Origin: Magallana gigas
Taxonomy: Eukaryota
Assembly (NCBI RefSeq): GCF_963853765.1
Contig: NC_088859.1
Coordinates: 50,344,001 to 50,408,000 of the forward strand
Direction of reading: 5' to 3'
DNA length: 64,000 nt
Part shown: in pieces, positions 7,009-64,000 of the stretch
Position numbering within the stretch: the first letter of the stretch is position 1
Layout: every line of letters begins with the position of its first letter
Translations under genes and position numbers: made by a program
The notes under the pieces: generated by a model
Databases searched by the model: none
What the model was told of the DNA's origin: nothing
Seen by the model: only the letters and a program-made list of their open reading frames with translations

Positions 7009-8190
7009 ATGACATCAACACCTACAACAGAAGAATTTCGGATCTTAAAACACCAACCTCGTCTTGTTTCCAAGAACTCTATGTACAATATTAAGCATGT
7101 TGGAACTCAAGGAAAAGGAAAGTACCTTATGCATGACTTTTTCACCACAATGGTGGATACAAAGTGGAGATGGAATGTACTTATATTTGTAAGTGGATTT
7201 GTGCTCACGTGGTTATTATTTGCGTTATTTTATTGGCTAGTTTCAAAACTTCATGGTGATTTAAATGACGTAAAAACAACCAGTCTGAGGCCATGTTTTG
7301 AGAACGTCAATTCTTTTACGGCAGCATACTTGTTTTCGATTGAGACGCAGACGACCATTGGGTACGGATTTCGTTACGTCACAGAAGAATGCCCGTACGC
7401 GGTTGTCGGCGTTATACTACAGAACATAGTGGGAGCTGGTTTGCAGGCGGCGCTGGCGGGACTTGTGGTGGCCAAAGTGAGGCGAAGCAAAAAGAGATCA
7501 AACACATTGATGTTCAGTTCCGTGGTCTGCATTGTAGAAGAAGACGGCGTGTATAAACTCGTCATCAGAATCGGGGACATGCGTCGATCACATATAATTG
7601 GTGCGCGCGTGCGCGGTCATCTCTTCAGAACGATGAGATCAAGAGACAGCAGAAATCACCCGGTGATGTGTTTCCCGTTGGAGTTTAATGGAGAGGACGG
7701 GAGTCCGTGGTTGTTTATGGCATGGCCGACCCAGCTGGTACACACGATAAACGATAAGTCGCCGTTCTGGAAGATATCCCGAGACGACTTAGAGAGGGAG
7801 GATTTCGAGCTGGTTGTAATTTTAGACGGTATTGTGTCCACCACAAGCACTATTCTCCAAACACAGACTTCATACATGGCCTGTGACATTCTGTGGGGCC
7901 ATCGGTTTAACACTATGGCCAGCAGATACAACAGCAACGATTCTTTAGTGGTAGACTACTCCAGCTTCAATCGAACCCACCCTGTTGCTATTCCTGAGTG
8001 TAGCGCCTATCAGGTCAGCGTGTTCCGGAAGCTAGGCTACAGCATTATACACAGAGATCCGGAGAACAATAATCCGTCGTATTTTGAAATCAGGAAAACA
8101 AAGGAGGAATCTCCCTCCCAGTCACGCATTCTTCATTACAGACACAATAAGGCAGTTGTCAGCACGCCGAGTCGGTGCGCGAACCTCTAG
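7009..8190 (+). CDS. Inward-rectifier potassium channel (Kir/KCNJ family), paralogue B, single coding exon, 393 aa
   Basis: DFFTTMVDTKWRW, CFENVNSFTAAYLFSIETQTTIGYGFRYVTEECP, AKVRRSKKR, HTINDKSPFW, FELVVILDG; a splice acceptor (ctgtttctttccag, ending 6986) just upstream implies a 5' UTR exon further upstream. Confidence 0.96.
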   Translation: MTSTPTTEEFRILKHQPRLVSKNSMYNIKHVGTQGKGKYLMHDFFTTMVDTKWRWNVLIFVSGFVLTWLLFALFYWLVSKLHGDLNDVKTTSLRPCFENVNSFTAAYLFSIETQTTIGYGFRYVTEECPYAVVGVILQNIVGAGLQAALAGLVVAKVRRSKKRSNTLMFSSVVCIVEEDGVYKLVIRIGDMRRSHIIGARVRGHLFRTMRSRDSRNHPVMCFPLEFNGEDGSPWLFMAWPTQLVHTINDKSPFWKISRDDLEREDFELVVILDGIVSTTSTILQTQTSYMACDILWGHRFNTMASRYNSNDSLVVDYSSFNRTHPVAIPECSAYQVSVFRKLGYSIIHRDPENNNPSYFEIRKTKEESPSQSRILHYRHNKAVVSTPSRCANL

Positions 8191-12288: not shown

Positions 12289-14176
12289 GCCAGCCGTTCT
12301 GCTACAGCTTATAATCCAGGAAAACGATAAGTCCGATTCGCTCGAAATTGTACCAAAATTGTTAAATTTCACTTGATGGTATCGAAAGGGTGACGGTACT
12401 TCTGGCAGTATTATCTAATGTAGCATAATTACACGCTCTATATCACGTAAATTAGTGAATTAAATAGGCTGAAATCTTATATATATGCACGTTTTTGTAC
12501 AATCAGTTTTTCATGGTTTTTTTTTTATAACAATTTCATATTTTCTGGGTGAAATGAGAGTTGTTCCCATTATATCTAAAATGATAAATTCGAGTGAAAG
12601 GATTTTCAAAAAATGTAAAGGACTTTGCGGTTTGGATAAAAATGCAAATTTAAAACCCAAACCTCGGTAATAATTCATCCAAAGTTTCTTTCATCAGCGG
12701 AGGATTTTAGATGTGAGCTACTGGATGTGTCGACCAAACAGCGACAGCTCGGAACGATAGCGAGACACAAGCGGCTCACGGAGAGATAACGGTAGATTCT
12801 TCAAATTCCTAGCCCAATTTTACCGAATACTTTCCTATCTAATTTGAGTAAATTTATAATTTATTATCTATCTGGAAATAAACGTATTCTTTATCTTCTA
12901 TCTAAACGTAATCTGTGAGCCCCTATCACCCATTTTAAAGTGGAAAGAAATTAGAAACAAAATATGTTCTGGATAACCTATTTCTCATACATGTGCAGTA
13001 CTTGTCCAAGTTACACATTAAATATAATTTTGAGATATTAAAAGTCAATGGAAAATTCTTAAAAGTTAAACCATAATTTCTTCGAAAACTACCTTTGATG
13101 TCCTTTTCTTACTGACATTTAAAAGCTAGAAAAAGAAAACTAAAACAAAACAGAAATCACCAAAAATATTTTGAAAAAATGTCTTCGGAAATGAAAAATA
13201 GTAGATTTTGTTCCTTGTGGACAAAGAGATAAAAAATTCAATTAATTTTGTGCACTGAAATGTAAAATCAAATTCTCTGGAATTCGTCCTCGGCTGATTC
13301 GTGCACTTGAGCGAAAGCAGAGGTGATTATATAGCTCCATATCAAACCAGGCGCTACCAGATAGATCGGGCGGACCCAAAAGCTGAGAAAACTAACGACG
13401 TTACACCTCTATCGATATTGTCAATATATTGCAAAATGTTTTGCACAAAATGTCTATTAACTCGACAGGGAGTCGCATTCGGTTGTAGAATACGGAGATT
13501 TTGTACTAGATACCTTGATAGTTTTGGGTGTCTCACGAATCGAATGTGTCTCTGATGCAAAGTCTGCAAATTCTAAGACATCACATGCATACATACATGT
13601 ATGTACGGATATTGCAGAATGTTACTGTAGCATTCCTATTATTTTTCCTATCAATTTGTGATCAGGCATGTTTATATAATTTCACTATCGCCCAAGTAAA
13701 TGACCACCAAAGAATCAATACACATTACCGAAGTTAAAGAGTCGATTTCTTATAAAGGGAGCATTAGCCAGAACATTTCCACTAATACAAGGAATTAATG
13801 AAACATATTGGAGAAAATGAAAATAAAATCTCAAAAAATATTAATCTTTTCCGTAAATTTCCCTGGAATGAATAATCCTTCTATTGTTGTGTTGGGTTGT
13901 AAACATTTATATTGGAGGCAAGCTCTTTTTACTGGGGGTCGTAGAGAGCCATGGACCCGGGTCATCGATATTGGACCTCAGTATAAATGGAACCCTAGCG
14001 ATACAGCAGCCAAAGAAAATGACAACACCCCACCCAGAGTGTTTCAAAGATAACATGTGAGTAATCACCAAACTGACATCTATAATATTTACTAGTAAGT
14101 CTTTCTCTTTTATGAAACTGAAATTCCTGTTTTTGTTTTGTAGCTTATTGTCGTTTCCCTTTCCGGTCCAAAAACC

Positions 14177-16220
14177 ATGCGGCGCTTTCTGCCCCTAACT
14201 CTTCTCCCTCTATTTCTGGGTGTGTTCTGCAAGGATGAAATGGTAACTGATTTTGCTTATTTGATAAAGCTTCATAACATTGTTATTTGTAAATGCAATC
14301 CAATACATCAATGTTCAAATTCATGTTTCCTTATCCGGAAAAAATATCTGATCCCCAAGGTGGCCAAAGGAGTAAAAGGTTTCAAATCAAAAGGAAAATT
14401 TTTCAAAATAATGGGACCAAAAGGCGAAGATAGAAAGGCTTTCCAGATACTTGAGGTACGAGACAACCGTTAAAGTTTCCTTTCCATCAAATATTCTGAA
14501 TGATACGATAAATGTACAAAACTTGTTACAAATGAGTTTTGGTTCAGTGTTTAACTAATCGCTAATAACGGAAGGGCGTATAATTAAAAGTTCATCGACT
14601 CGATGCGGTTGTTTTCAATGTGTTACAACAGGAGTACGAGGAGGTGAAGGGTCCCGATGATGGATCATTTGAAGAAAAGATTCAGGAACAGGAGCTAATT
14701 TATTATCAGTACGAAAAACAGCGACGAATCGCCAAAAAGTTAGGGGCGGATCCGGAAGAGGTTGAGATTCCTGAAAAAGCTAAAGAATACATGGTAAGGA
14801 AAACAACCCTCTCAGATCCACATTTTCTTTCGAATTATATGTAATTTAAGGGTAAAGTAAAATGTTGGAACGCATTATCATTACAAACATAGAAAGCATA
14901 TGGCGCTGACCTCTCTAAAAGGAACAAACAAAAGGCTTCCCTTGAACAAAGAAAAAGCAATAAACAAAGAAAACAGCAGCTCGTTCAGAAACTGAACAAG
15001 GACGCCAACAGGAAAGGAAAGAATCGTCGAAGACGGCGTAACAGAAGACGGAGAAGAAGCAGATCACGTAACCGGAAGGGGCGGGGCAAACGCATGGCTA
15101 TTGATGACGAGACACGGTTCTGGACCAATGCAATTGTTCCTTACAAATTTACTTCCGAAATCAAAAGTGAGTAAATTTAAACTTCTCCCATCTCCCATGC
15201 GTTAAATTTTTTGTTATCTATTTGAGCTTACGACGTTTGTCCAAAGTAACAAGTAAATCCACTTAAGTAAAAATATGCAATCAATAAATATTAGCTGAAG
15301 AAGAACGAATGGGTCGATTGCGCGCTCACCGGCGGTACGAGTACTGGACGTGTATCCGCTTTGTTCCATGGACGAAGACCACACCCAGCGAGTATGGGCT
15401 GGACCACAGCAACTATCTGAAACACGTGGACAACAACGGGTAACCTTGTACCCAGGGGTGGAGGTGCTGGTCGACTGCATGGGTCAGAAATTTTATCTTG
15501 TCCCGTTGGATTGCGGTGATGGTTACACATGAAACGAAAGAGATTGTTAAAAACTGTCCTTCCCTGAAATTGTCAACAATTCTAAAGTTTAATTATTCGG
15601 TGTTTACTAGTTATGTACGTGTACATTTGTAGTGCTTGTAGGTTTCATTTTTTTTTGTAGAACAGTGATTTTAATTTAACCATCGAATATGTTTTGTATC
15701 CGGATATACAAGGTATTGGAATGTAGTTTTAGGTTTTGAATATGTTTGATGTATTACTATAGTGTGAATTTTATCGTTAACTTACTGAACTTGTAAGTGA
15801 AATGTACTTGAATAAAGCTTTATCTTACAGTATCAATAATATTGCCGCGACTGTTCCAATGTTCAATGGCAATTTATTGTCGAGATAGTCTCGTTTCAGA
15901 AAAATACATGAATTATTACATTAATCATTACGAGTTTTCAGAGATTTAAGCATTCTTTTGACTAAATGTTTGCTGTTAATGTGTTACTACAGGGTTGTTG
16001 TGATACTTAATTGTTTGACATACCCCAGGTGCTGGTCTGTGTTAGGAAACACAAGAGGAAATGGACAGAAGATATCTTGCTGCATGGACGTAAGTCGCGG
16101 GGATTCGTATGTCCAGAGTCATTATCATAAATATGCTTACATTTTATGACGAGTATATGAAATCATTAATGCACAGAGGTTTACAAAGGAAGCCTCAATA
16201 TCAACATTGTTTTCATGAAT

Positions 16221-16308
<88 letters not shown>

Positions 16309-19300
16309 CTTCGTTTGACCGATGTCAGTTGTATCTGTAGGAGTCGTGTGTTCACGAGCTTGGTCACTCAATGGGTCTACACCACGAGCAGAAGAGTTAC
16401 CTCCACCACGACTTCATCAGGATCAACTTCAAGAACGTCATGCCAGGTAAATCATATATCACACAAAAAATAACGAGATATAAGCCCCCAATCACCCCAT
16501 GTATCCGTCACTATGTGATTGTTGTATCCGTCACTGTGTGATTGTTGTATCCGTCACTGTGTGATTGTTGTATTCGTCACTGTGTGATTGTTGTATCCGT
16601 TACTGTGTGATTGTTGTATCCGTCACTGGTGTGATTGTTGTATCTGTCACTGTGTGATAGTTGTATCTGTCACTGTGTGATAGTTGTATCCATCACTGGT
16701 GTGATTGTTGTATCTGTCACTATGTGATTGTTGTATCCGTCCCTGTGTGATTGTTGTATCCTTCTCTGTGTGATTGTTGTATCCTTCTCTGTGTGATTGT
16801 TGTATCTGTCACTATGTGATTGTTGTATCCGTTACTGTGTGATTGTTGTATCCGTCTCTGTGTAATTGTTGTATCCGTCACTGTGTGATTGTTGTATCCG
16901 TCACTGTGTGATTGTTGTATCCTTCTCTGTGTGATTGTTGTATCTATCTCTGTGTGATTGTTGTATCCGTCCCTGTGTGATTGTTGTATCCGTCCCTGTG
17001 TGATTGTTGTATCCGTCTCTGTGTGATTGTTGTATCCGTCCCTGTGTGATTGTTGTATCCGTCCCTGTGTGATTGTTGTATCCGTCCCTGTGTGATTGTT
17101 GTATCCTTCACTGTGTGATTGTTGTATCCGTCCCTGTGTGATTGTTGTATCCGTCTCTGTGTGATTGTTGTATCCGTCCCTGTGTGATTGTTGTATCCGT
17201 CTCTGTGTGATTGTTGTATCTGTCACTGTGTGATTGTTGTATCCGTCACTGTGTGATTGTTGTATCCGTCACTATGTGATTGTTGTATCCGTCACTGTGT
17301 GATTGTTGTATCCGTCACTGTGTGATTGTTGTATCTGTTACTGTGTGATTGTTGTATCCGTCTCTGTGTGATTGTTGTATCTGTCACTGTGTGATTGTTG
17401 TATCCTTCTCTGTGTGATTGTTGTATCTATCTCTGTGTGATTGTTGTATCCGTCCCTGTGTGATTGTTGTATCCGTCTCTGTGTGATTGTTGTATCTGTT
17501 ACTGTGTGATTGTTGTATCCGTCACTGTGTGATTGTTGTATCCGTCACTATGTGATTGTTGTATCCGTCACTGTGTGATTGTTGTATCCGTCACTGTGTG
17601 ATTGTTGTATCCGTTTCTGTGTGATTGTTGTAGATCGTGTCAAAGAGTACCAGGAGGAAGACCCCTCCAGTTCAAGGACGTTCGGTTATTACGACTTGGG
17701 AACTTCGATGCATTATAACAAGTTTGTAAGTGTCATTTGATATTAGGATAATAAACGAGATTATTGAATAAACTAAGTGTTTTGACTTAGCACAGTTGAA
17801 CAAAAATCAGAAACAACAATAGTACGCCTTTGAAAAAAAATTCCATAATCTCATTTTTCCTATGATTTATCATCTGAAAGTGAATATAGATAGTCGAGAG
17901 ACAACTAGATTCCCAAAGATACACGTATATTTTCTCCTCTTTTTCATCGTATTAAGAAATTTAAAAAAAAATTTGTCAGATGTTTTCCGCCAACTCTGAA
18001 CCGACGATGACTGTCCTTGACCCTAACCTTGAGTATCTGATGTTGACCCCTGACCCCTACAACTACTACATGTTCTACGAGATCTCGCGTATCCACCAAT
18101 GTCAAGGTAATCTACTCAATCAACACAAACTATTTAACCATATCAAGTTAACGTACACATGTGAGGTTTGAATTTATAGTGGCTAGCTTTTTGCCGTTTA
18201 AGTAACTCAGAGCTGGACACATATTTATAGCTCGCTTAGTTTTCTTGCTATTGGGTTAAAAATCAAACTGGTGCAGATGGTTTGCAGAGAAAAAAATTAC
18301 GCCTGACCTTAAGTTTGCCATGGGTGGCATTAACAGTAGTGTACCATTCATTGCAGAGATGCGTTGCTCGGACTTCCCTACTGAATGTAAAAACGGCGGA
18401 TACGTCTCATACATCCGGGACACTTGCACCTGTCGCTGTCCAGAGGGCCTTGACCCTGTTACCGGATGTACCACTGTTTACCGTGGAGGTAGGATTCTCC
18501 CGACCCATCCATTCGAGACACTTTTATATTTGTATTCTGGACCAAAGTTAAACGTATCCATTTCGTTTCTTTAATATATAAAGACGGTTCTGTAACATTG
18601 CAGACGATAGACTCCGAGGAGCCATGTGGCCGTCAGACGGGTTTTCAATGTTAAAACCTCGTAATGGCTGTCCAGACGGATTTAAAGAGGGAAGCCTCGT
18701 TATGGGAGTCCCCGGTGCGGATCACTCCGAGCAGTACCATCTGGACACAAGGCTGACGGACGACGAACTGACCGTGAGGTTCTGTACAAAGGAGCAGACG
18801 ACAGGCAGAGACACTGAGTGGGAGCCCGGGCAGTACTGTATACTACGGACCGACCGGAAGTGTCCCAATGGTAAGGTACTGTGTAATCTGACGATAAGGA
18901 AGTTCTGTCAATGATGAATATTACTAGTACAAGTATTTTTATTCCCCTAAATAGGATTTGAAGATGGTCACATCGTTGTTGACAACGAGAAAAATCCCCA
19001 TGTGGCGTCACTTCCGCTTCCTGATGTTGACGTAGACAAGAACGTTCGTTTAAACTTCTGTTGTCGCAATGATGGTAGCTGGTTTGATCAGATCTATCTG
19101 CCAAGTAGTCAACCATTTGTATTGTTTGAAAGAGGATACGAATGCCAGGAGGTTAAAGGTAATCAACTTTGACAATCACTTAAAGGACTACTCATATAAA
19201 TGTATCAGATAAGACAACATGTTACAAGAGAGTACCTTATGTTTAAGATATGATGACGTCGAGTGAATGGCTGATGATTGAGAACGACTTATCCGGAGAA

Positions 19301-22300
19301 TACGAGATTGTCGGATCTGCGCCGGACGTTACAGTCCGACAGGACAATAAGTACTTCATCAACGTCTGCTACTACTCCCCCGTCAATTACGGTCTGTGTG
19401 TGTCGATATAAAAGTCGCTGGTAGTGATCGCTGTTAGACTCTATAATCCTTAAGAATAGAAAAGCTCTCTATGGTTAAAGAAAAATATTCAAATTGATTT
19501 CAATGTACTTTTAATTTAAAACATTGCATTTTTCTTCGCTTAATATTAGTTCAAGGCTGGAAAATTCAAATTTAAAAAATTTGTGTGGATCGAATCGTTA
19601 ATTATTGGCAATCAATCTACACTCTAAGACAGTGGGTCTTCTTGTAGATTGTGGTGGCATGTTCGAACTGAGTGAGGACAAACCCACTGTGACCATTGCC
19701 TCCCCAAACTACCCTGTCCCCTACAACCCCTCCCAGCGTTGTCAATGGACCATCAGGGTAACGGAACTAGTCACCATAGCATGCGATGAGTTACCTTTAT
19801 CTACAGATCGTATAACCCATTGATACAATGAATTCTGTCTTTACAGAGTCCAAGAAATACCAAAATAAAGCTTACATTTGAGAAGTTTGAGGTGGAGCTG
19901 AGAGAGGACGACACCTGTGGTGATTACCTTGAGGTTCGATTTACGCTTCCGGGTCAACCAGGCATCAAGTAAGCTGTTGTTGATGTTCTGTCCCTTTGTA
20001 AACTCGGTAAAATGAAGCAAGAGTACCGTGCTTTCTATCTCTGGGATAACAAGGAGTAGTACTCGTACTAGTAAATAATTCTAGATCTACTCCAAAAGGT
20101 TTTACAATTCAGATTTCTTAACGGAAAATCATTATTGAAATTGAATGCTGTTTTCTGTACAGCTACTGTGGATCCACATTTGATCCGACCGTCCTGACAG
20201 AGATGAACTATCTTGGCCTGGTCTTCACGAGTGGACCTGATGTTGTTCAATCAGGATTCAAAGCAACCGTATCGTTATTAACAGGTACAACAGGTGCTAC
20301 ATACTTAGCATCGTTACATAAAACAAAGCAGTTTTAAAGTAGGTTAATCGTTAACTGTATCTTTTCAGACGACGCCTTGTGTTACACTGGAGCCGGGGAG
20401 GATTACAGGGGGAGGGTCAACTTTACCAAGGACATGGAGCCCTGTCTCCCCTGGACTGAGGTCCAACACTGTCCCCACAGCACCTTCAACCAACAGTAAG
20501 CAGTTGGTGCACTTAACCAAATTCCTGAAATGAATAACAAAATACATGTATTTAAGTTTGACACGTAGCAGTGTGTGTAGAAGAAACAGACTTTGCAAAG
20601 TGACAAAACATTCTGGTTTCTACTATATAGAGGTAACCCCCCCCCCCCCCCAAAAAAAAAAAACCCCAAAAACAAGCTATTTTATTGTCATACTTGTTGC
20701 ATTGTTGTAATTATGTTTTCAGTGACCTTGACGATGGCCTTGACCATAACTACTGCCGTAACCCTGGAGACGGTACATCACCATGGTGTTATGTCCACCG
20801 TGACAACTGTGGCAGAAATTACTGTGACCCCTGCGGACTTGGTATGTACGTTATATATACACAATGTCGACCCTGTTTCTTGTCTTACAGTTAGTTGCGC
20901 AAATTATGCTCAGTTTTTGGTATCTTTTACAGGTCACTGTTTTGACAAATACTTCGACTGCAAGGAGCTGCTTATAAATGGAACAGCAGTATGTGAACAT
21001 GATATCGACATAAAGTATGGATGCCGGAAATCTTGTGGATTTTGTGAGGGAAAACCAGATAAACCAGGTGAGACACAAAAGAATTGTCCATTTTTTGTAT
21101 ATAATCATTATTTATTCATTTATTGATTCAAATTGTTAAAAATAAACTTTATAACAACCCTACTTTTACAGTAGTCAACGTAAAATGTAAGCCACCAGCG
21201 GATGTTGATGACGCAAAACCGACGTCACCAATGAAGAGTGAATACAGCGTTGGAGAAAACGTCACCTATAAATGTAATGGCGGACCTGAGAAAGAACTCA
21301 GACAGTGCTTGTCTGACGGCACCTGGTCTGGAGGAGGCTTTGTGTGTGGGCGTAAGTAATGCGTGAATCAAAAATAAAACATCCTTATTAAATGATACAA
21401 ACTAAGTTTTTTTTTCAATTTTATTAGCAGTCAGAATGTTAATGTAATGTATAGTAGAAGTTCTTTCTCAGGGCTGGATTTAAATATGATAAACTGAGTT
21501 GTTTATATGAATTTTAACAGGTTGTCCAAACAAGTGGGTTCCCTTCAAACAATCATGTTACAGATTCTTTGACGTTGAAGTCAATAAAACTGCAGCTGGC
21601 CAACTTTGCAAAGCTTATGATGCAGTGGTGACGTCATCCAAAAATGCAGGAGAAGACGACTTTCTTACCCACATCAGGTTTTTAATGTTACATGAAAATA
21701 TGTGTATGTGGAAACTTTGTGTCTTTCATCATTCATTATGTAGCAATGATTCTAGACATCATCACAGTAGTTTATAATTTATCTGTTTACAGGGACGATA
21801 TGCGACCTATCTGGTTAGGCTTGGAGGAAGTTGTTGGTAGGGGGCGCCACAGATGGCAGGAAGACATGTCCCAGGTTACGTGGACTAAATGGAAGAAAGG
21901 TTACATATTTTTCAGAAATCATTTATGAAACTAATAATTATTCTTAGTACCTCTGATTCTGTCTCTTCCATTAAAAAAGCAAAATTTTGTTATATTAAAA
22001 TAGGGTTTTTTATGTTTAGGTAAAAGCAGCAGTTGTGCGTTCATGGATAGGGAAGGCCGCTGGTCAGGGGTCAGGTGTGATGCCCCGAAATACCTCGCTG
22101 TTGTTTGTAAATTCGCACCTTCAGGTGCGTTCACTTCCTATAAAATCTTATTTTTTTTCCCATTAATATATCCTTAAGTTTTTAAACAAGATGGTTCTCT
22201 TCTAATTTAGAGCGAACTGAATGTGCTGATGCATATTCAAATTGTGAAGATAACATAAAATTGGAACCAGGAGCGTGCAATGAATATCCGGAATTTGCCT

Positions 22301-22960
22301 GGCAGAGTTGTCCATCAACATGTGGAATCTGTGGGACAAAAGGTAGAGTTATGAACGAGACTTAGTACATCGTATCCATGGTAAAAGGAAACCTATTGTG
22401 TGATCAACTAATTTAGCGTATTCTACTTTAAAACTCTGCACTTGCAATATTGAAATGTTGTTATAAACATTTTCTATTAGGTAAGGAATGCCAGGCCCCA
22501 AAATCTCCAGATAACTCAGTTCAACTTTCAAAAGGCCAAACGGTTGAGGTTGGGGACTTCATTGAGTATGACTGCAAAAAAGGATATATACTGAATGGTG
22601 GAAATCTGCGTAGAGCATGCCTTCCATCGGGAGAACTTACGGGGGAACCCCCAAACTGTATAGGTATGTACATCTGCAGCTTGTGTAATTTTAACTATAC
22701 ATTGTATCAACAGACTGAAATTGTAAAACCTCTATGTTGCACAGGAGAACACAGTTTACCGACGGCCAATTTTGACGTGGAATTACGTCAGCGGAGTCGT
22801 GACGGTGGGACCGACGGCGCGGCGTACACCGCCGTCAACGAGGCCCTCCGGGTACACAAGGGTGGGCGTCTGGTTAGGTGGGAGTTCTACAGTATATATG
22901 ATGGAGTACTGGTCCTCCAGGTCTGGCGAAAGTCAAAGAGGGCAGGGAAGAAGATCAGGT

Positions 22961-23013
<53 letters not shown>

Positions 23014-23442
23014 GAGAGCGAGATAGTACATGTTTGATATAAAATAGGAGTATGATAAAGAGAGAAAGAGAGAGGATTGGACAAAGAATCTGTTTCTATC
23101 ATTAATGCCATAATGTTATATATTTATAGTTTTGAACTGGTCGGCCAAAATGTTGTTAAGAGCTCAAAGAACCACAGAATTCGAAAATTCGAGGTTCCAC
23201 GAGAGGACCAGATTAACGTGAAAGTTGGAGACGTGATTGGGTTCTTTTTACCCAAAGATATAAAAGGAGGAATAACTCTGGACAAATGCAATAAAAAGTT
23301 TGCTGGGCGGACTTACGGCAGTCAGCTAGTGTTTGACGGCCGGAAGAAACTACATGACGACTGGACGGTGGGAGAAGTGTACACATTCAAGCCGGACCCC
23401 CAGGACTGCAAGGTCATTTCTATCAAAGCCTTCGTGATATGA
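14177..23442 (+). CDS. Secreted mosaic astacin (M12A) metalloprotease, 26 coding exons, ~1301 aa: SP-pro-astacin-EGF-ApeC-CUB-kringle-ShKT-CCP-CTLD-ShKT-CCP-unknown domain
   Basis: Exons: 14177-14242, 14632-14793, 14893-15166, 15295-15439, 16029-16089, 16341-16446, 17634-17725, 17980-18106, 18357-18488, 18604-18870, 18955-19158, 19248-19391, 19648-19757, 19847-19968, 20163-20284, 20369-20495, 20723-20841, 20933-21067, 21172-21351, 21521-21677, 21793-21899, 22020-22124, 22211-22342, 22481-22663, 22745-22958, 23130-23442. All introns are GT-AG, phases are consistent, and the sum is 3906 nt with no internal stop. Confidence 0.9.
16226..16306 (+). repeat. (GA)n microsatellite in protease intron 5
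   Basis: About 40 uninterrupted GA units. Confidence 0.98.
16501..17633 (+). repeat. 23-bp minisatellite (gtatccgtcactgtgtgattgtt), ~49 copies, in protease intron 6
   Basis: Direct tandem array; the last unit ends gattgttgtag and forms the exon 7 acceptor. Confidence 0.97.
18357..18488 (+). other. EGF-like module exon
   Basis: CSDFPTECKNGGYVSYIRDTCTCRCPEGLDPVTGC, the CxNGGY...CxC pattern seen after astacin domains. Confidence 0.8.
18604..19391 (+). other. Apextrin C-terminal (ApeC) domain, exons 10-12
   Basis: WPSDGFSMLKPRNGCPDGF...FCTK...WEPGQYCI...CPNGFEDG..DNE...FCCRNDG...LPSSQPFVL...CQEVKG...CYY matches the ApeC Cys/Trp pattern. Confidence 0.85.
19648..20284 (+). other. CUB domain, exons 13-15
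   Basis: CGGMF...IASPNYPVPYNPSQRCQWTI...LTFEKFEVE...CGDYLEV...YCGS...LVFTSG...SGFKA. Confidence 0.92.
20369..20841 (+). other. Kringle domain, exons 16-17
   Basis: CYTGAGEDYRGRVNFT...CLPW...NYCRNPGDGTSPWCY...YCD. Confidence 0.92.
20933..21067 (+). other. ShKT domain 1
   Basis: CFDKYFDCKELLINGTAVCEHDIDIKYGCRKSCGFC, six-Cys ShKT spacing. Confidence 0.85.
21172..21351 (+). other. CCP/sushi domain 1
   Basis: CKPP...YSVGENVTYKC...RQCLSDGTWSG...C. Confidence 0.88.
21521..22124 (+). other. C-type lectin-like domain, exons 20-22
   Basis: CPNKWVPFKQSCYRFF...LCKAYDA...IWLGL...RWQEDMSQVTWTKW...CAFM...WSGVRC...VVC; no EPN/QPD motif visible. Confidence 0.87.
22211..22342 (+). other. ShKT domain 2
   Basis: CADAYSNCEDNIKLEPGACNEYPEFAWQSCPSTCGIC. 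Confidence 0.85.
22481..22663 (+). other. CCP/sushi domain 2
   Basis: CQAP...VGDFIEYDCKKGYILNGGNLRRACLPSGELTGEPPNC. Confidence 0.9.
22745..23442 (+). other. Unassigned ~175-aa C-terminal module (exons 25-26)
   Basis: GRLVRWEFYS...VLQVWRKS...FELVGQN...INVKVGDVIGFF...; open frame to TGA at 23440-23442; I cannot assign it to a named family. Confidence 0.7.
22962..23017 (+). repeat. (GA)n microsatellite starting at the donor of protease intron 25
   Basis: gtgagagagatagagagag... Confidence 0.95.
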
Positions 23443-61738: not shown

Positions 61739-64000
61739 TCATGATTTTACAAAGTCATTATATTTTGCTGGTGGCTTCACTTCGTGTCCTGATCTAGTTG
61801 TGATGGTCTCTGGATCTTTATTAGTGTTCGGCCCAGGATAAGCTCCTTTGTTGTCATTAGATGTGCAGTTTGGATTGTCTTCTGGCACGTCTGGATTGTC
61901 GTATGGCACTGGGCTTTCCATTGATTTTCTCAGGTGTTTCCTGTTTCTTGTATAGTCGCTCCAGCCTCTGCTTTGACCTCGTACGATTTTGTCTCTATGT
62001 TGGTCCCGGTTATAGTTCCTTTTTCCCAATGGTCTGTTTGGGGTTTTCACTCTAACCGTTTCTCCCACTGATAGCGGTTGTAACGGATGTGCGGATTTGT
62101 TGTAGTACTCTGCTTGTTTTAATTTGGCGATATCAATTTTCCCTTTCTCAAAGGTAGCATCTTTAGGCTGGTGTAGGTTCCCTTTTATAGGAAGGAGTGT
62201 TTTTGTTCTCCTACCCATTAACCGCATGGCTGGACTTGTTCCCACATGTTGCGTTGGTGTATTTCTGTAATCCAACAGTGCAAGGTACGGATTCGATTTT
62301 ATATGTTTTGCTTTTTTAAGGATTTGTCTGGCAACTTTGACAGCTTTTTCTGCTTTCCAATTGATATTTGGGTAGTGAGGCGATGATGTTATATGGTCAA
62401 ACTCCCACAGATGTTCAAAGTCCGCAAATTCCTCCGACGCAAACTGTGGTCCGTTATCTGACATGCATGTGTCTGGTATGCCGTGTCTAGCAAATTGTGA
62501 TCGAAGTTTCCTTATGACCTCCCGCGAGGTCAGCTGGTTCAATGATTCCATCTCAAAGAAATTCGAGAAATAGTCAGTTATGATTAGGTAGTTCTGGTGA
62601 TCAAATGTGAAAATGTTCAAGCCGACCTTAGCCCATGGACGTGGCGGTACTTCATGTGGTTTCAACGGTTCTCTTCCTTGATTGCTGTCAAAGGTGCGAC
62701 AGGTTTCACATTTTTCTATGAAGTCTTTGACCTCGGCATTCATTTGTGGCCAGTATATCGATTCTCTGGCGCGTTTGAGACATCCTTCAATTCCTAGATG
62801 GGATGCGTGAATTCTCTTAAGCATATCCTTACGAAGTGCTTGTGGAATGACTGCTCTGTCTCCTTTGAATGGACAATTCGTCTCTTATATCGTAATAGGG
62901 ACTAATGAGCCCTGAAATGGAATTTCTATCATTGGGCCAACCACTGCAAATTGTTGACCCTAACTCTTGTAGAGCAGAATCCCCTGCTGTTTGATTCTGA
63001 ATGTCCTCTAGGCGTTCCGGGGCAATAGGCAAGAATTGGAGCATGTTGATGGCTTCCACTGTCGATTCAAACTTTGATTGCTGTTCATTGGTAAATATGC
63101 ACGGCTCAGTGTATCTGCTAGCTCCATGTCCTTTCCCGGGCGGTATCTCAGGTGTACTTCGTATTTCTGCATCCTGAGCAACATGCTTTGGATGCGCTTT
63201 GGTGCTTTTTATAGTGGTTTGTTTTCAATCATCTCCAGGGGCTTGTGGTCTGATTGGACATGGATTGGTCTCCCGTAAGTATAAATATTGAATTGTTCCA
63301 ATCCGAATAATACTGCTAAAAGTTCCTTTTCAATTTGGTATATCTAGTTCCAGTTTCAGTCAAAGATCGGCTGGCGAAAGCAATCGGTAATTCATCCTGA
63401 AGTAAGGCAGCTCCAAGACCTTTTTCTGATGCGTCACATTGTAGTGTTAATGGTTTAACTGGATTGAAATCTGTAGCACAGGTTCGGCGGTGACTAGATT
63501 TTTAATTTGCTTCACTGCATATTCATGTTCTGAGGTCCAATGCCATTCTATATCTTTCTGTGTTAGTTTTCGAAGTGGATCGCAGATGTCGCTTAGTTTT
63601 GGAAGGAACTAAGCTAGGTATGTGACAAATCCTATGAATCGGCGTACGCCGACAACATCAGTTGGGTTTGGCATATCAAGAACTGCCTTTACTTTTTCGG
63701 GGTCTGGTTTTAATCCTTCAGCTGTTATAGTGTGACCGATGAATTTGACCTCTGATAGTTGAAATTTCATTTCGTCTTTGTTGAGCTTCAACTGTTTCTC
63801 TCTGCATCTATCCATGAGCTGTATAAAGTTTCTGTCATGATTTACTTGGGCTTCTGCTACTGTTTTTCCCTCTCCTATCACAAGTTTGTCATCGTGAATG
63901 CTTTTGACAGTAACCCCTCCAGTGCTTGGTGCTGGCGACGCTGAAATTCCGCTGGTGCTGTGTTGATTCCAAAAGGCATGCGGAGCCAACGAAACCTGCC
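61739..64000 (-). mobile_element. Decayed Ty3/Gypsy pol (RT-RNase H-integrase), continuing past the window end
   Basis: IHDDKLVIG (RT), TLQCDASEKGLGAA (RNase H), SDHKPLE, HASHLGIEGC...CETC (IN zinc finger), DYFS, SDNGPQF; frameshifts between the fragments; domain order is Gypsy-type. Confidence 0.93.

Follow-up and report, generated by a model that had tools for sequence, protein, structure and literature searches.

Does the long series of exons on the forward strand of this 64,000-nt window (the whole stretch of Magallana gigas DNA that was analysed) belong to one gene, and on what would its product, a protease followed by a string of extracellular modules, act? The region corresponds to a single gene, LOC105334113 of Magallana (Crassostrea) gigas, spanning window positions 14177-23442 (+). 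A preliminary description had given 26 exons that splice into one frame of about 1301 aa, and when these were rebuilt from the ATG at 14177 to the stop at 23440-23442, with GT-AG splicing throughout, an uninterrupted frame of 3903 nt, coding for 1300 aa and a stop, was obtained. The single open frame thus held, but the exon list was one coding exon short and used an acceptor at 21175 where RefSeq uses 21172. The RefSeq protein XP_034311325.2 matched the rebuilt frame from residue 235 to the end except for one extra valine, which stems from this NAGNAG acceptor.

The missing exon was found in spliced contigs from runs X1, X5 and X8 (three studies). These contigs contain the joints 14242 to 14360 and 14455 to 14632, and therefore place an in-frame coding exon of 96 nt (32 aa) at 14360-14455 (+) between the first two exons of the earlier list; the direct joint 14242 to 14632 of the 26-exon model was discarded for this reason. 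The peptide encoded by the added exon is also present in the orthologues of C. virginica, Saccostrea, Ostrea and Mytilus. The corrected coding sequence is 4002 nt long, has 27 coding exons separated by 26 introns, each of them GT-AG, contains no internal stop and encodes 1333 aa. Its first coding exon (14144-14242, +) holds the ATG at 14177, which has an in-frame stop upstream, and the predicted signal peptide. A 5'UTR exon precedes it at 13970-14056 (+; start approximate, with depth from near 13970), and the donor at 14057 joins 14144, a GT..AG joint (14056 to 14144) present in contigs of X1 and X5. Transcripts hence bore out the 5' junctions in contigs of three studies and extended the model by the 96-nt exon and the 5'UTR exon. 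The three runs were taken as RNA by guess, and the spliced nature of their contigs follows from the GT-AG joints. The contigs link the 5'UTR exon with coding exons 1-7, the loose end being the beginning of exon 8; those that measure 3.25-3.35 kb run about 3030-3140 nt further downstream, where 3092 nt of coding sequence are left. For exons 8-27 the junctions derive from sequence identity with the RefSeq protein, from comparison with orthologues and from the lengths of the contigs. Two side observations concern the models themselves: several RefSeq models of orthologues lacked the first exon in this analysis, and a minisatellite with a 23-bp unit in 49 copies occupies an intron at 16500-17632 (+), reaching the acceptor of the Met-turn exon.

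A frame of this length could in principle be a chimera of at least two genes or a decaying pseudogene. RefSeq isoform X2, the sole RefSeq protein retrieved for the locus, begins at Met267 inside the catalytic domain and lacks the signal peptide, which might be taken in favour of this reading and from which a truncated product may exist; likewise an astacin-like decoy frame lies in an intron at 15444-15530. The frameshift that two astacin-like frames seemed to indicate there was rejected, since the true exon is 16029-16089 and the contigs skip 15440-16028. Against a chimera or pseudogene, spliced contigs connect the 5'UTR with the zinc-site exon and continue beyond it, the coding sequence of 4002 nt is free of internal stops, the architecture is collinear in orthologues at 32-35% identity and in three paralogues, and one paralogue is present as a single cDNA contig (L005) with an unbroken 1538-aa ORF containing Astacin, ApeC, CUB, Kringle, Lectin_C and Sushi. 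Contigs, open coding sequence and collinear relatives thus contradict this explanation, which we consider scarcely credible, and they support the earlier claim of one gene for one astacin, the secretion of which is predicted.

The hydropathy maximum at aa 4-18 is the sole strongly hydrophobic stretch in the protein and was read, from sequence alone, as a probable signal peptide. A conserved propeptide motif, KIMGPKGEDRKAF at 14405-14443, lies within the 14360-14455 exon, and the remaining Lys/Arg/Glu-rich propeptide (14632-15093, +; exons 14632-14793 and 14893-15166) ends in a polybasic RGKR at 15082-15093. An RxKR sequence, the putative convertase site, stands immediately ahead of the mature N-terminus in all 13 aligned family members. 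The astacin (M12A) catalytic domain (aa 176-377; 15094-18106, +) is encoded by the rest of exon 14893-15166 and by exons 15295-15439, 16029-16089, 16341-16446, 17634-17725 and 17980-18106 (+). The zinc site HELGHSMGLHHE is located at 16353-16388 (aa 273-284) and its pattern HExxHxxGxxHE is kept in 13/13 aligned members; the Met-turn SMHY is at 17705-17716 (TSMHY, aa 327-331) and SxMHY is found in 12 of the 13. The zinc-site exon alone scored 28.1 bits with PF01400 (cut-off 22.5), and Astacin reached 99.4 bits in the orthologue of C. virginica, whose astacin domain is 90% identical. Crayfish astacin was matched at E 1e-18, and for the catalytic domains of BMP-1 and TLL-1 E lay between 1e-9 and 1e-8. 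Among oysters the domain is 88-90% identical and, jointly with the kringle, the best-conserved module. A non-catalytic adhesive or scaffold protein in which the astacin domain is a pseudo-protease appears very improbable, as the three zinc-binding histidines, the catalytic glutamate and the Met-turn tyrosine are all present in LOC105334113 and the catalytic residues are kept family-wide, save for a His-to-Leu change in the Met-turn of Mytilus (MLY).

The nearest solved relatives of the catalytic domain are astacin, hatching enzymes, meprins and BMP-1, and a furin-activated pro-astacin with EGF and CUB is the toolkit of tolloid/BMP-1. Both observations favour a protease that processes endogenous extracellular material (matrix, mucus, shell matrix or egg envelope), comparable to tolloid/BMP-1, SpAN/BP10 and the hatching enzymes, with the modules acting as exosites, a reading to which we assign about an even chance. 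Larval attachment in oysters has also been found to correlate with the astacin and ApeC families, at the family level only (PMC10225672). This reading is weakened by a module order unlike that of every characterised astacin and by the ApeC domain, which is unexplained by any known matrix role.

The order of the modules is signal peptide, basic propeptide ending in RGKR, astacin, EGF, ApeC, CUB, kringle, ShK, Sushi, CTLD, ShK, Sushi and C-terminal domain, and agrees exactly with that proposed beforehand. The domains were scored with Pfam on single exons and on the near-identical database protein P0001. E-values on single exons were 2e-6 for Astacin, 1.2e-13 and 1e-10 for ApeC, 3e-6 for CUB, 5e-6 and 9e-9 for Kringle, 6e-4 and 9e-6 for ShK, and 2e-7 and 6e-7 for Sushi; on P0001 ApeC scored 122.9 bits, CUB 67.8, Kringle 57.7 and Lectin_C 37.2, and Sushi was found twice. 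The EGF-like module (18357-18488, +) is one phase 1-1 exon with six cysteines, the pattern of which is kept across the family, and its EGF profile match is weak (E 0.043). The CUB domain occupies three exons (19648-20284, +), and the kringle (20369-20841, +) has two exons, the expected cysteine pattern and a PF00051 score well over the cut-off of 34.3. The two ShK-like modules contain six cysteines each; the first (20933-21067, +; one exon) scored 20.8 bits, just below the cut-off of 20.9, and the second (22211-22342, +) 26.6 bits. Both Sushi/CCP modules have four cysteines and exceeded the cut-off of 20.7, with 31.9 bits for the first (21172-21351, +; one exon) and 30.2 for the second (22481-22663, +). 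The C-type lectin-like domain (21521-22124, +; three exons, six cysteines; Lectin_C cut-off 22.6) has no EPN/QPD motif and carries WSG in place of WND, the corresponding places reading WKKGKSSSC and RWSGVRC. No Pfam match to MACPF was obtained on any exon or on P0001.

The middle region had been assigned to ApeC, and this assignment was borne out by a full domain: PF16977 was matched over model positions 1-208 of 208 on P0001, and single exons scored 51.9 and 42.3 bits. The domain (18604-19391, +) is built from exons 18604-18870, 18955-19158 and 19248-19391, and its eight cysteines (aa 428-626) align across the family. None of the three DXED motifs is intact, the positions reading ADHSE, DNEK and ENDL; the second position is DDD in the paralogues and gastropod members. 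The DXED motifs are only relatively conserved and their function has not been established (PMC8361754). Binding of Lys-type peptidoglycan and agglutination of microbes are known for short-form ApeC proteins from oyster, snail and amphioxus (PMC9585378, PMC8361754); the binding has been measured for short forms only, and a snail protein retained it after mutation of all three DXED motifs (PMC9585378). The complete eight-cysteine domain, the activities of the short forms and the dispensability of the motifs in the snail protein all speak for an immune "recognise-and-cut" role, in which ApeC, possibly assisted by the CTLD and the C-terminal domain, would bind microbial polymers and the astacin would cleave microbial or host proteins there. 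Such an enzyme would correspond to apextrin (MACPF plus ApeC), with a protease as its effector. The deviation at all three DXED positions and a CTLD lacking EPN/QPD and WND argue against it, as does the location of ApeC, which is internal in LOC105334113 but C-terminal in the proteins tested for binding. This role is plausible, and we hold it as a tentative possibility only. As for structure, the ApeC model was confident and two structure searches returned no convincing solved neighbour: among 48,161 chains none matched the model at Z >= 2, and no Foldseek TM score exceeded 0.14. A search by sequence turned up no experimentally solved ApeC domain. Such a total blank is odd for an all-beta domain, and the predicted structure is therefore read only as having no clear solved relative.

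The C-terminal domain (22745-23442, +; exons 22745-22958 and 23130-23442, including the stop at 23440-23442) comprises 174 aa with two cysteines and was assigned to no Pfam family, neither from its exons alone nor with 27 aligned relatives. Its predicted fold is a lectin-like jelly-roll beta sandwich (pLDDT 91.5), and the model reached Z 10.1-10.6 with phage tail and capsid jelly rolls and with the lectin-like domain of Cwp84; Foldseek against PDB and Swiss-Prot models gave no match below E 0.001. This modelled resemblance to carbohydrate-binding jelly rolls would favour the immune role. Bacterial sequence matches to the domain (P0013, P0017 and P0019) cover it partially and lie within unrelated repeat proteins, and were accordingly treated as generic beta-sandwich similarity. 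The same unnamed domain occurs in molluscs, annelids and sponges.

Orthologues were found in Crassostrea, Saccostrea, Ostrea, Mytilus, Mercenaria, Mizuhopecten, Potamilus, Haliotis, Babylonia, Nucella, Aplysia and Elysia, with the full architecture collinear in bivalves and gastropods down to 32-35% identity, and a quick gene tree broadly tracks the class tree. Across the oyster genera LOC105334113 occurs as one copy, its branches are short and identity is 75-82%. This is unlike the typical fast-turnover immune receptors of bivalves and counts against an immune role, and strictly vertical orthology with slow evolution across molluscs is what a matrix protease would be expected to display. In favour of the immune role, oysters contain a dual-ApeC sister subfamily that is tandemly expanded, with three tandem collinear paralogues located by tblastn on another chromosome, C6, in M. 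gigas.

The domain combination had been presented as new, and this did not hold: the gene and its orthologues are already in RefSeq and UniProt, the combination is shared by collinear orthologues across Bivalvia and Gastropoda, and the accession appears in a published ApeC survey. A full-text literature search with the locus and accession numbers gave no match. Supplementary Table 1 of Li et al. 2022 (Front Immunol; PMC9585378) lists XP_034311325.1 (LOC105334113) among 130 mollusc ApeC proteins, together with the family members Aplysia XP_005088874.2 and Mizuhopecten XP_021348426.1. The survey text describes two mollusc ApeC groups (8 and 9) with more than 10 extracellular-type domains, group 8 being common to bivalves and gastropods, and assigns the groups no function in that description (PMC9585378). 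The family studied here likewise spans bivalves and gastropods and may be likened, from the text description, to group 8. The entry for LOC105334113 in that table is the N-terminally truncated isoform, whereas the model given here is full-length (PMC9585378). The gene and its mollusc-wide family are thus already known from public databases and the 2022 survey, and as a discovery the locus adds little, its orthologues and domain mix having been catalogued.

Taken together, the product of LOC105334113 is, with good probability, a secreted pro-astacin of 1333 aa whose family is conserved in bivalves as well as gastropods, and the following mechanism is proposed for it. The N-terminal signal peptide would send the protein to secretion, and a highly charged propeptide of about 150 aa with its conserved KIMGPxG motif would hold the enzyme latent until a furin-type convertase cleaves after RGKR (aa 172-175) and releases the mature N-terminus. 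The catalytic domain, with complete zinc site and Met-turn, would then work as an endopeptidase, and the ten non-catalytic modules (EGF, ApeC, CUB, kringle, two ShK, two Sushi, CTLD and the lectin-like jelly roll) may anchor it on a target outside the cell that is rich in glycan or protein, and choose its substrates. As to that target, our expectation is about evenly poised for substrates of the animal itself (matrix, mucus or developmental), distinctly lower for microbial surfaces and lowest for something else. Slow single-copy evolution, degenerate DXED motifs and a CTLD devoid of sugar motifs are no less compatible with a matrix or mucus role than with an immune one, none of them being decisive. 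We regard it as rather unlikely that the family is a mollusc-wide pattern-guided metalloprotease in which ApeC and the jelly roll dock on peptidoglycan-bearing microbes and the astacin cuts surface proteins or triggers a humoral cascade; if this were true, the family would stand beside apextrin or the lectin-pathway proteases as their zinc-protease equivalent. Bivalves commonly possess mosaic extracellular proteins, and we know of no peptidoglycan-binding domain of these animals other than ApeC. A conserved mollusc family that joins an ApeC domain of the peptidoglycan-binding type to an apparently active protease is a concrete target for studies of oyster immunity or matrix biology.

Among known systems, tolloid/BMP-1 and the sea-urchin SpAN/BP10 resemble the predicted product in being secreted pro-astacins that have a convertase site and in which EGF and CUB modules follow the catalytic domain. 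LOC105334113 differs from tolloid in having one EGF and one CUB with ApeC between them, followed by kringle, ShK, Sushi, CTLD and jelly roll; the CUB-CUB-EGF-CUB-type repeats of the tolloid/BMP-1 subfamily are absent and by architecture it is not a member. Astacins with six-cysteine ShK-like modules are known from the nematode NAS proteins and from the cnidarian HMP2 and PMP1. In these proteins the ShK module is terminal or the main accessory one, whereas LOC105334113 has two amid eight other modules. Apextrin (signal peptide, MACPF, ApeC) shares the design of an effector fused to ApeC in a secreted invertebrate protein, but its effector is a pore former and its ApeC is C-terminal, while here the effector is a zinc protease and ApeC is internal. 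The short-form ApeC proteins (CgACP1, BgACP1 and amphioxus ACP1-5) consist of signal peptide and ApeC only and share the eight cysteines; CgACP1 keeps all three DXED motifs, in contrast to LOC105334113. Finally, MASP, C1r and C1s combine CUB, EGF and paired Sushi modules with a C-terminal serine protease in humoral proteins. That protease is unrelated to astacin and the module order is another, and the likeness to LOC105334113 is one of design only.

Consecutive pieces of a multidomain protein, LOC105334113, were found in stop-free segments of the plus strand from 14177 to 23442, and these were joined by matching canonical GT donors with AG acceptors. Nearly every junction had one clear solution, and the junctions 18870/18955 and 19391/19648 were decided by eye. 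The initial splice comprised 26 exons and 3903 nt (1300 codons plus a stop) with 0 internal stops, and this GT-AG splicing reproduced exactly the exon numbers and end coordinates of the 26-exon frame in the preliminary description. A segment at 15444-15530 that resembles astacin in two frames, through GCWS-like and DCG-like stretches, was considered as an exon or frameshift and rejected, being intronic and skipped by RNA contigs; the true exon near this decoy is 16029-16089.

Fourteen runs contained roughly 0.3 of the words sampled from the 9.3-kb stretch, which is the fraction expected from exons alone. RNA contigs from three runs of three different studies were aligned to positions 13600-16470 and gave GT-AG joints, all on the plus strand, from 14056 to 14144, 14242 to 14360, 14455 to 14632, 14793 to 14893, 15166 to 15295, 15439 to 16029 and 16089 to 16341; a loose contig end at 16446 carried the opening letters of the exon at 17634. 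Exons 1 to 7 as first proposed were borne out by these joints. The contigs added a 5'UTR exon (joint 14056 to 14144) and an in-frame 96-nt coding exon, 14360-14455, skipped in both 26-exon models; apart from this omission the first description of the gene is confirmed. The peptide encoded by this exon contains the motif KIMGPKGEDRKAF; it has hardly changed in the proteins of C. virginica, Saccostrea and Ostrea and can still be recognised in Mytilus. With this correction the gene has 27 coding exons and a product of 1333 aa, and an in-frame stop precedes the ATG. The contigs over exons 5 to 7 were 3.25-3.35 kb long and reached about 3030-3140 nt past 16446, the remaining CDS being 3092 nt, a length that fits a transcript running through all downstream modules. 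From the EGF domain on, phase-1 introns bound every module. Such boundaries are the usual mark of exon shuffling.

A second haplotype was seen at 15153-15422 in the RNA contigs of two studies, with 7 differences across 128 nt of the exon that starts at 15295 and 14 letters that differ where the preceding exon ends; four differences could be placed on codons and were mostly synonymous, one replacing His by Gln. The assembled contigs probably break there because of this polymorphism. The introns also contain repeats. A minisatellite at 16500-17632 (23-bp unit, 49 copies, 92% matches) fills its intron right up to the Met-turn exon's acceptor (17634); its unit starts with TGTAT, compared with TGTAG at the real site, and every copy is therefore a near-acceptor. 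An (AG)40 microsatellite lies at 16226-16306 in the intron preceding the zinc-site exon, and a (GA)32 run at 22961-23023 begins three bases past the donor of the exon ending at 22958. Elsewhere in the window, two intronless plus-strand ORFs, 1225-2292 (355 aa) and 7009-8190 (393 aa), code for entire inward-rectifier potassium channels, with IRK and IRK_C matched at E 1e-33 to 1e-48. Retroelement remnants are an ORF for reverse transcriptase at 33643-34365 (plus strand, RVT_1, E 3e-34) and one for an integrase at 61739-62824 (minus strand, Integrase_H2C2 plus rve).

Queried against 1.84 billion representative proteins, the last exon matched XP_034311325.1 ('uncharacterized protein LOC105334113 isoform X2 [Crassostrea gigas]') at 99% identity. 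The current Magallana gigas version, XP_034311325.2, matches our model identically from residue 235 onward except for one additional Val, because acceptor 21172 is used instead of 21175. In M. gigas, isoform X2 begins only at Met267, within the catalytic domain. The RefSeq models of the orthologues in C. virginica (P0027), Saccostrea echinata (P0037) and Ostrea edulis (P0038) have no signal peptide; their first residue falls inside, or shortly ahead of, the peptide of exon 14360-14455, and the first coding exon is probably missing from all three.

In a survey by Li et al. 2022, 130 mollusc ApeC proteins were sorted into nine groups (PMC9585378), and its Supplementary Table 1 includes XP_034311325.1, an Aplysia member (XP_005088874.2) and a Mizuhopecten member (XP_021348426.1). 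The family is therefore already catalogued, most likely as group 8. Our literature search of full texts returned no function for the family and no mention of the locus names, and the UniProt name of orthologues, 'Metalloendopeptidase', was assigned automatically. The original interpretation is partly borne out: the secreted multidomain astacin with ApeC is supported, and the claim of novelty is not, since gene and family were already public and surveyed. The significance is modest.

Domain content was examined with Pfam on single in-frame exons and then on XP_034311325.1 as a whole. Single exons matched Astacin (E 2e-6), ApeC (1.2e-13 and 1e-10), CUB (3e-6), Kringle (5e-6 and 9e-9), ShK (6e-4 and 9e-6), Sushi (2e-7 and 6e-7) and, weakly, EGF (0.043). 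The whole protein gave ApeC at 122.9 bits over positions 1-208 of 208, CUB at 67.8 bits, Kringle at 57.7 bits, Lectin_C at 37.2 bits and two copies of Sushi, and the C. virginica orthologue gave Astacin at 99.4 bits. Cysteine counts fit the modules (EGF 6, ApeC 8, CUB 4, ShK 6 each, Sushi 4 each, CTLD 6), and the full-length profile match together with the eight cysteines upholds the assignment of the middle region as ApeC. The sole strongly hydrophobic stretch is aa 4-18, indicating a signal peptide and no membrane anchor.

The C-terminal domain (last two exons, 174 aa) had no Pfam match, alone or as 27 aligned relatives. AlphaFold2 with this alignment of 27 relatives confidently predicted an all-beta domain (pLDDT 91.5, pTM 0.88), for which Foldseek returned nothing significant from the PDB. 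Exhaustive structural alignment matched it to a mycobacteriophage tail-tip domain (Z 10.6), a cyanophage capsid protein (Z 10.2), the lectin-like domain of Cwp84 (Z 10.1), carbohydrate-esterase binding modules (Z 8.3), and F-type lectins, PHR domains and CBM32/discoidin domains (Z 5.5-6.8). AlphaFold DB clusters placed the domain in other invertebrate extracellular proteins as well, including a Biomphalaria kringle protein (E 1e-9) and proteins of Mytilus, Lingula, Capitella and Amphimedon, and a language-model search scored unnamed clusters from sponges and annelids at 0.96 and Lectin_like and PHR clusters at 0.87. Bivalve members carry one copy; Haliotis and Babylonia carry three, separated by Sushi domains. 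We read the predicted structure as an unnamed lectin-like jelly roll, which, from its fold class, may bind a ligand. Such a fold, like the ApeC domain itself, would favour the immune 'recognise-and-cut' role first proposed, which draws by analogy only on the behaviour of short-form ApeC proteins and which we consider less likely than not.

The details of ApeC and CTLD speak slightly against a dedicated, fast-evolving immune receptor. The DXED positions of ApeC are degenerate (ADHSE, DNEK and ENDL); at the second of them the dual-ApeC paralogues retain DDD, as do most gastropod members. The literature gives no known function for these motifs (PMC8361754), and a snail ApeC protein with all three motifs mutated is reported still to bind Lys-type peptidoglycan (PMC9585378), so that the degeneracy weakens a peptidoglycan reading without excluding it. 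In the CTLD, EPN and QPD are both missing and WSG replaces the expected WND, which makes classical calcium-dependent sugar binding unlikely. The ApeC model (m7fe055e5a09d, 18604-19391) is a confident fold (pLDDT 89.5); a search for solved neighbours gave 0 chains at Z 2 or more, a blank that may be a tool failure of the aligner, Foldseek gave TM scores of at most 0.14, and no sequence relative was found in the PDB.

The only other last-exon matches in the M. gigas genome were three, all on another contig, C6, and each preceded by two ApeC domains and an exon with the astacin zinc site. By tblastn these loci are collinear with our model from the astacin domain to the C-terminus; they form a tandem array of dual-ApeC paralogues at 24968639-25064114 of contig C6 (minus strand; XP_065943763, XP_065943764 and XP_065944300, 1538-1542 aa), and a public cDNA contig of 4790 nt contains an unbroken 1538-aa ORF with the whole architecture. 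Ostrea and Saccostrea have tandem dual-ApeC copies of their own. The search for this architecture across Mollusca, suggested in the preliminary description, found full-length relatives with the same Pfam set in bivalves (Crassostrea, Saccostrea, Ostrea, Mytilus, Mercenaria, Mizuhopecten and Potamilus; the listed Ruditapes model misses ApeC) and gastropods (Haliotis, Babylonia, Nucella, Aplysia and Elysia), and outside molluscs only an astacin without ApeC. In a quick maximum-likelihood tree with SH-aLRT support only, gastropods split from bivalves, and the oyster dual-ApeC clade, with species-specific tandem copies, was sister to a clade of mussel and oyster single-ApeC proteins. The tandem expansion of this sister subfamily would favour an immune role, whereas LOC105334113 lies in a clade with one short-branched copy per oyster, and such single-copy, slowly evolving orthology argues against a dedicated fast-evolving receptor. 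An endogenous role in matrix, mucus or development has about an even chance of being correct.

The protease domain is well preserved. HExxHxxGxxHE, and RxKR directly N-terminal of the mature N-terminus, were present in 13/13 aligned family members and the Met-turn SxMHY in 12/13 (MLY in Mytilus); in LOC105334113 these are RGKR at aa 172-175, the zinc site at aa 273-284 and SMHY at aa 328-331. Identity among oysters is 88-90% for astacin, 81-91% for kringle, 74-81% for ApeC and 57-72% for the second Sushi domain, and the value for astacin indicates that the enzyme part is the most constrained. Its nearest solved catalytic domains are those of crayfish astacin (E 1e-18), fish hatching enzymes, meprins, BMP-1 and TLL-1.
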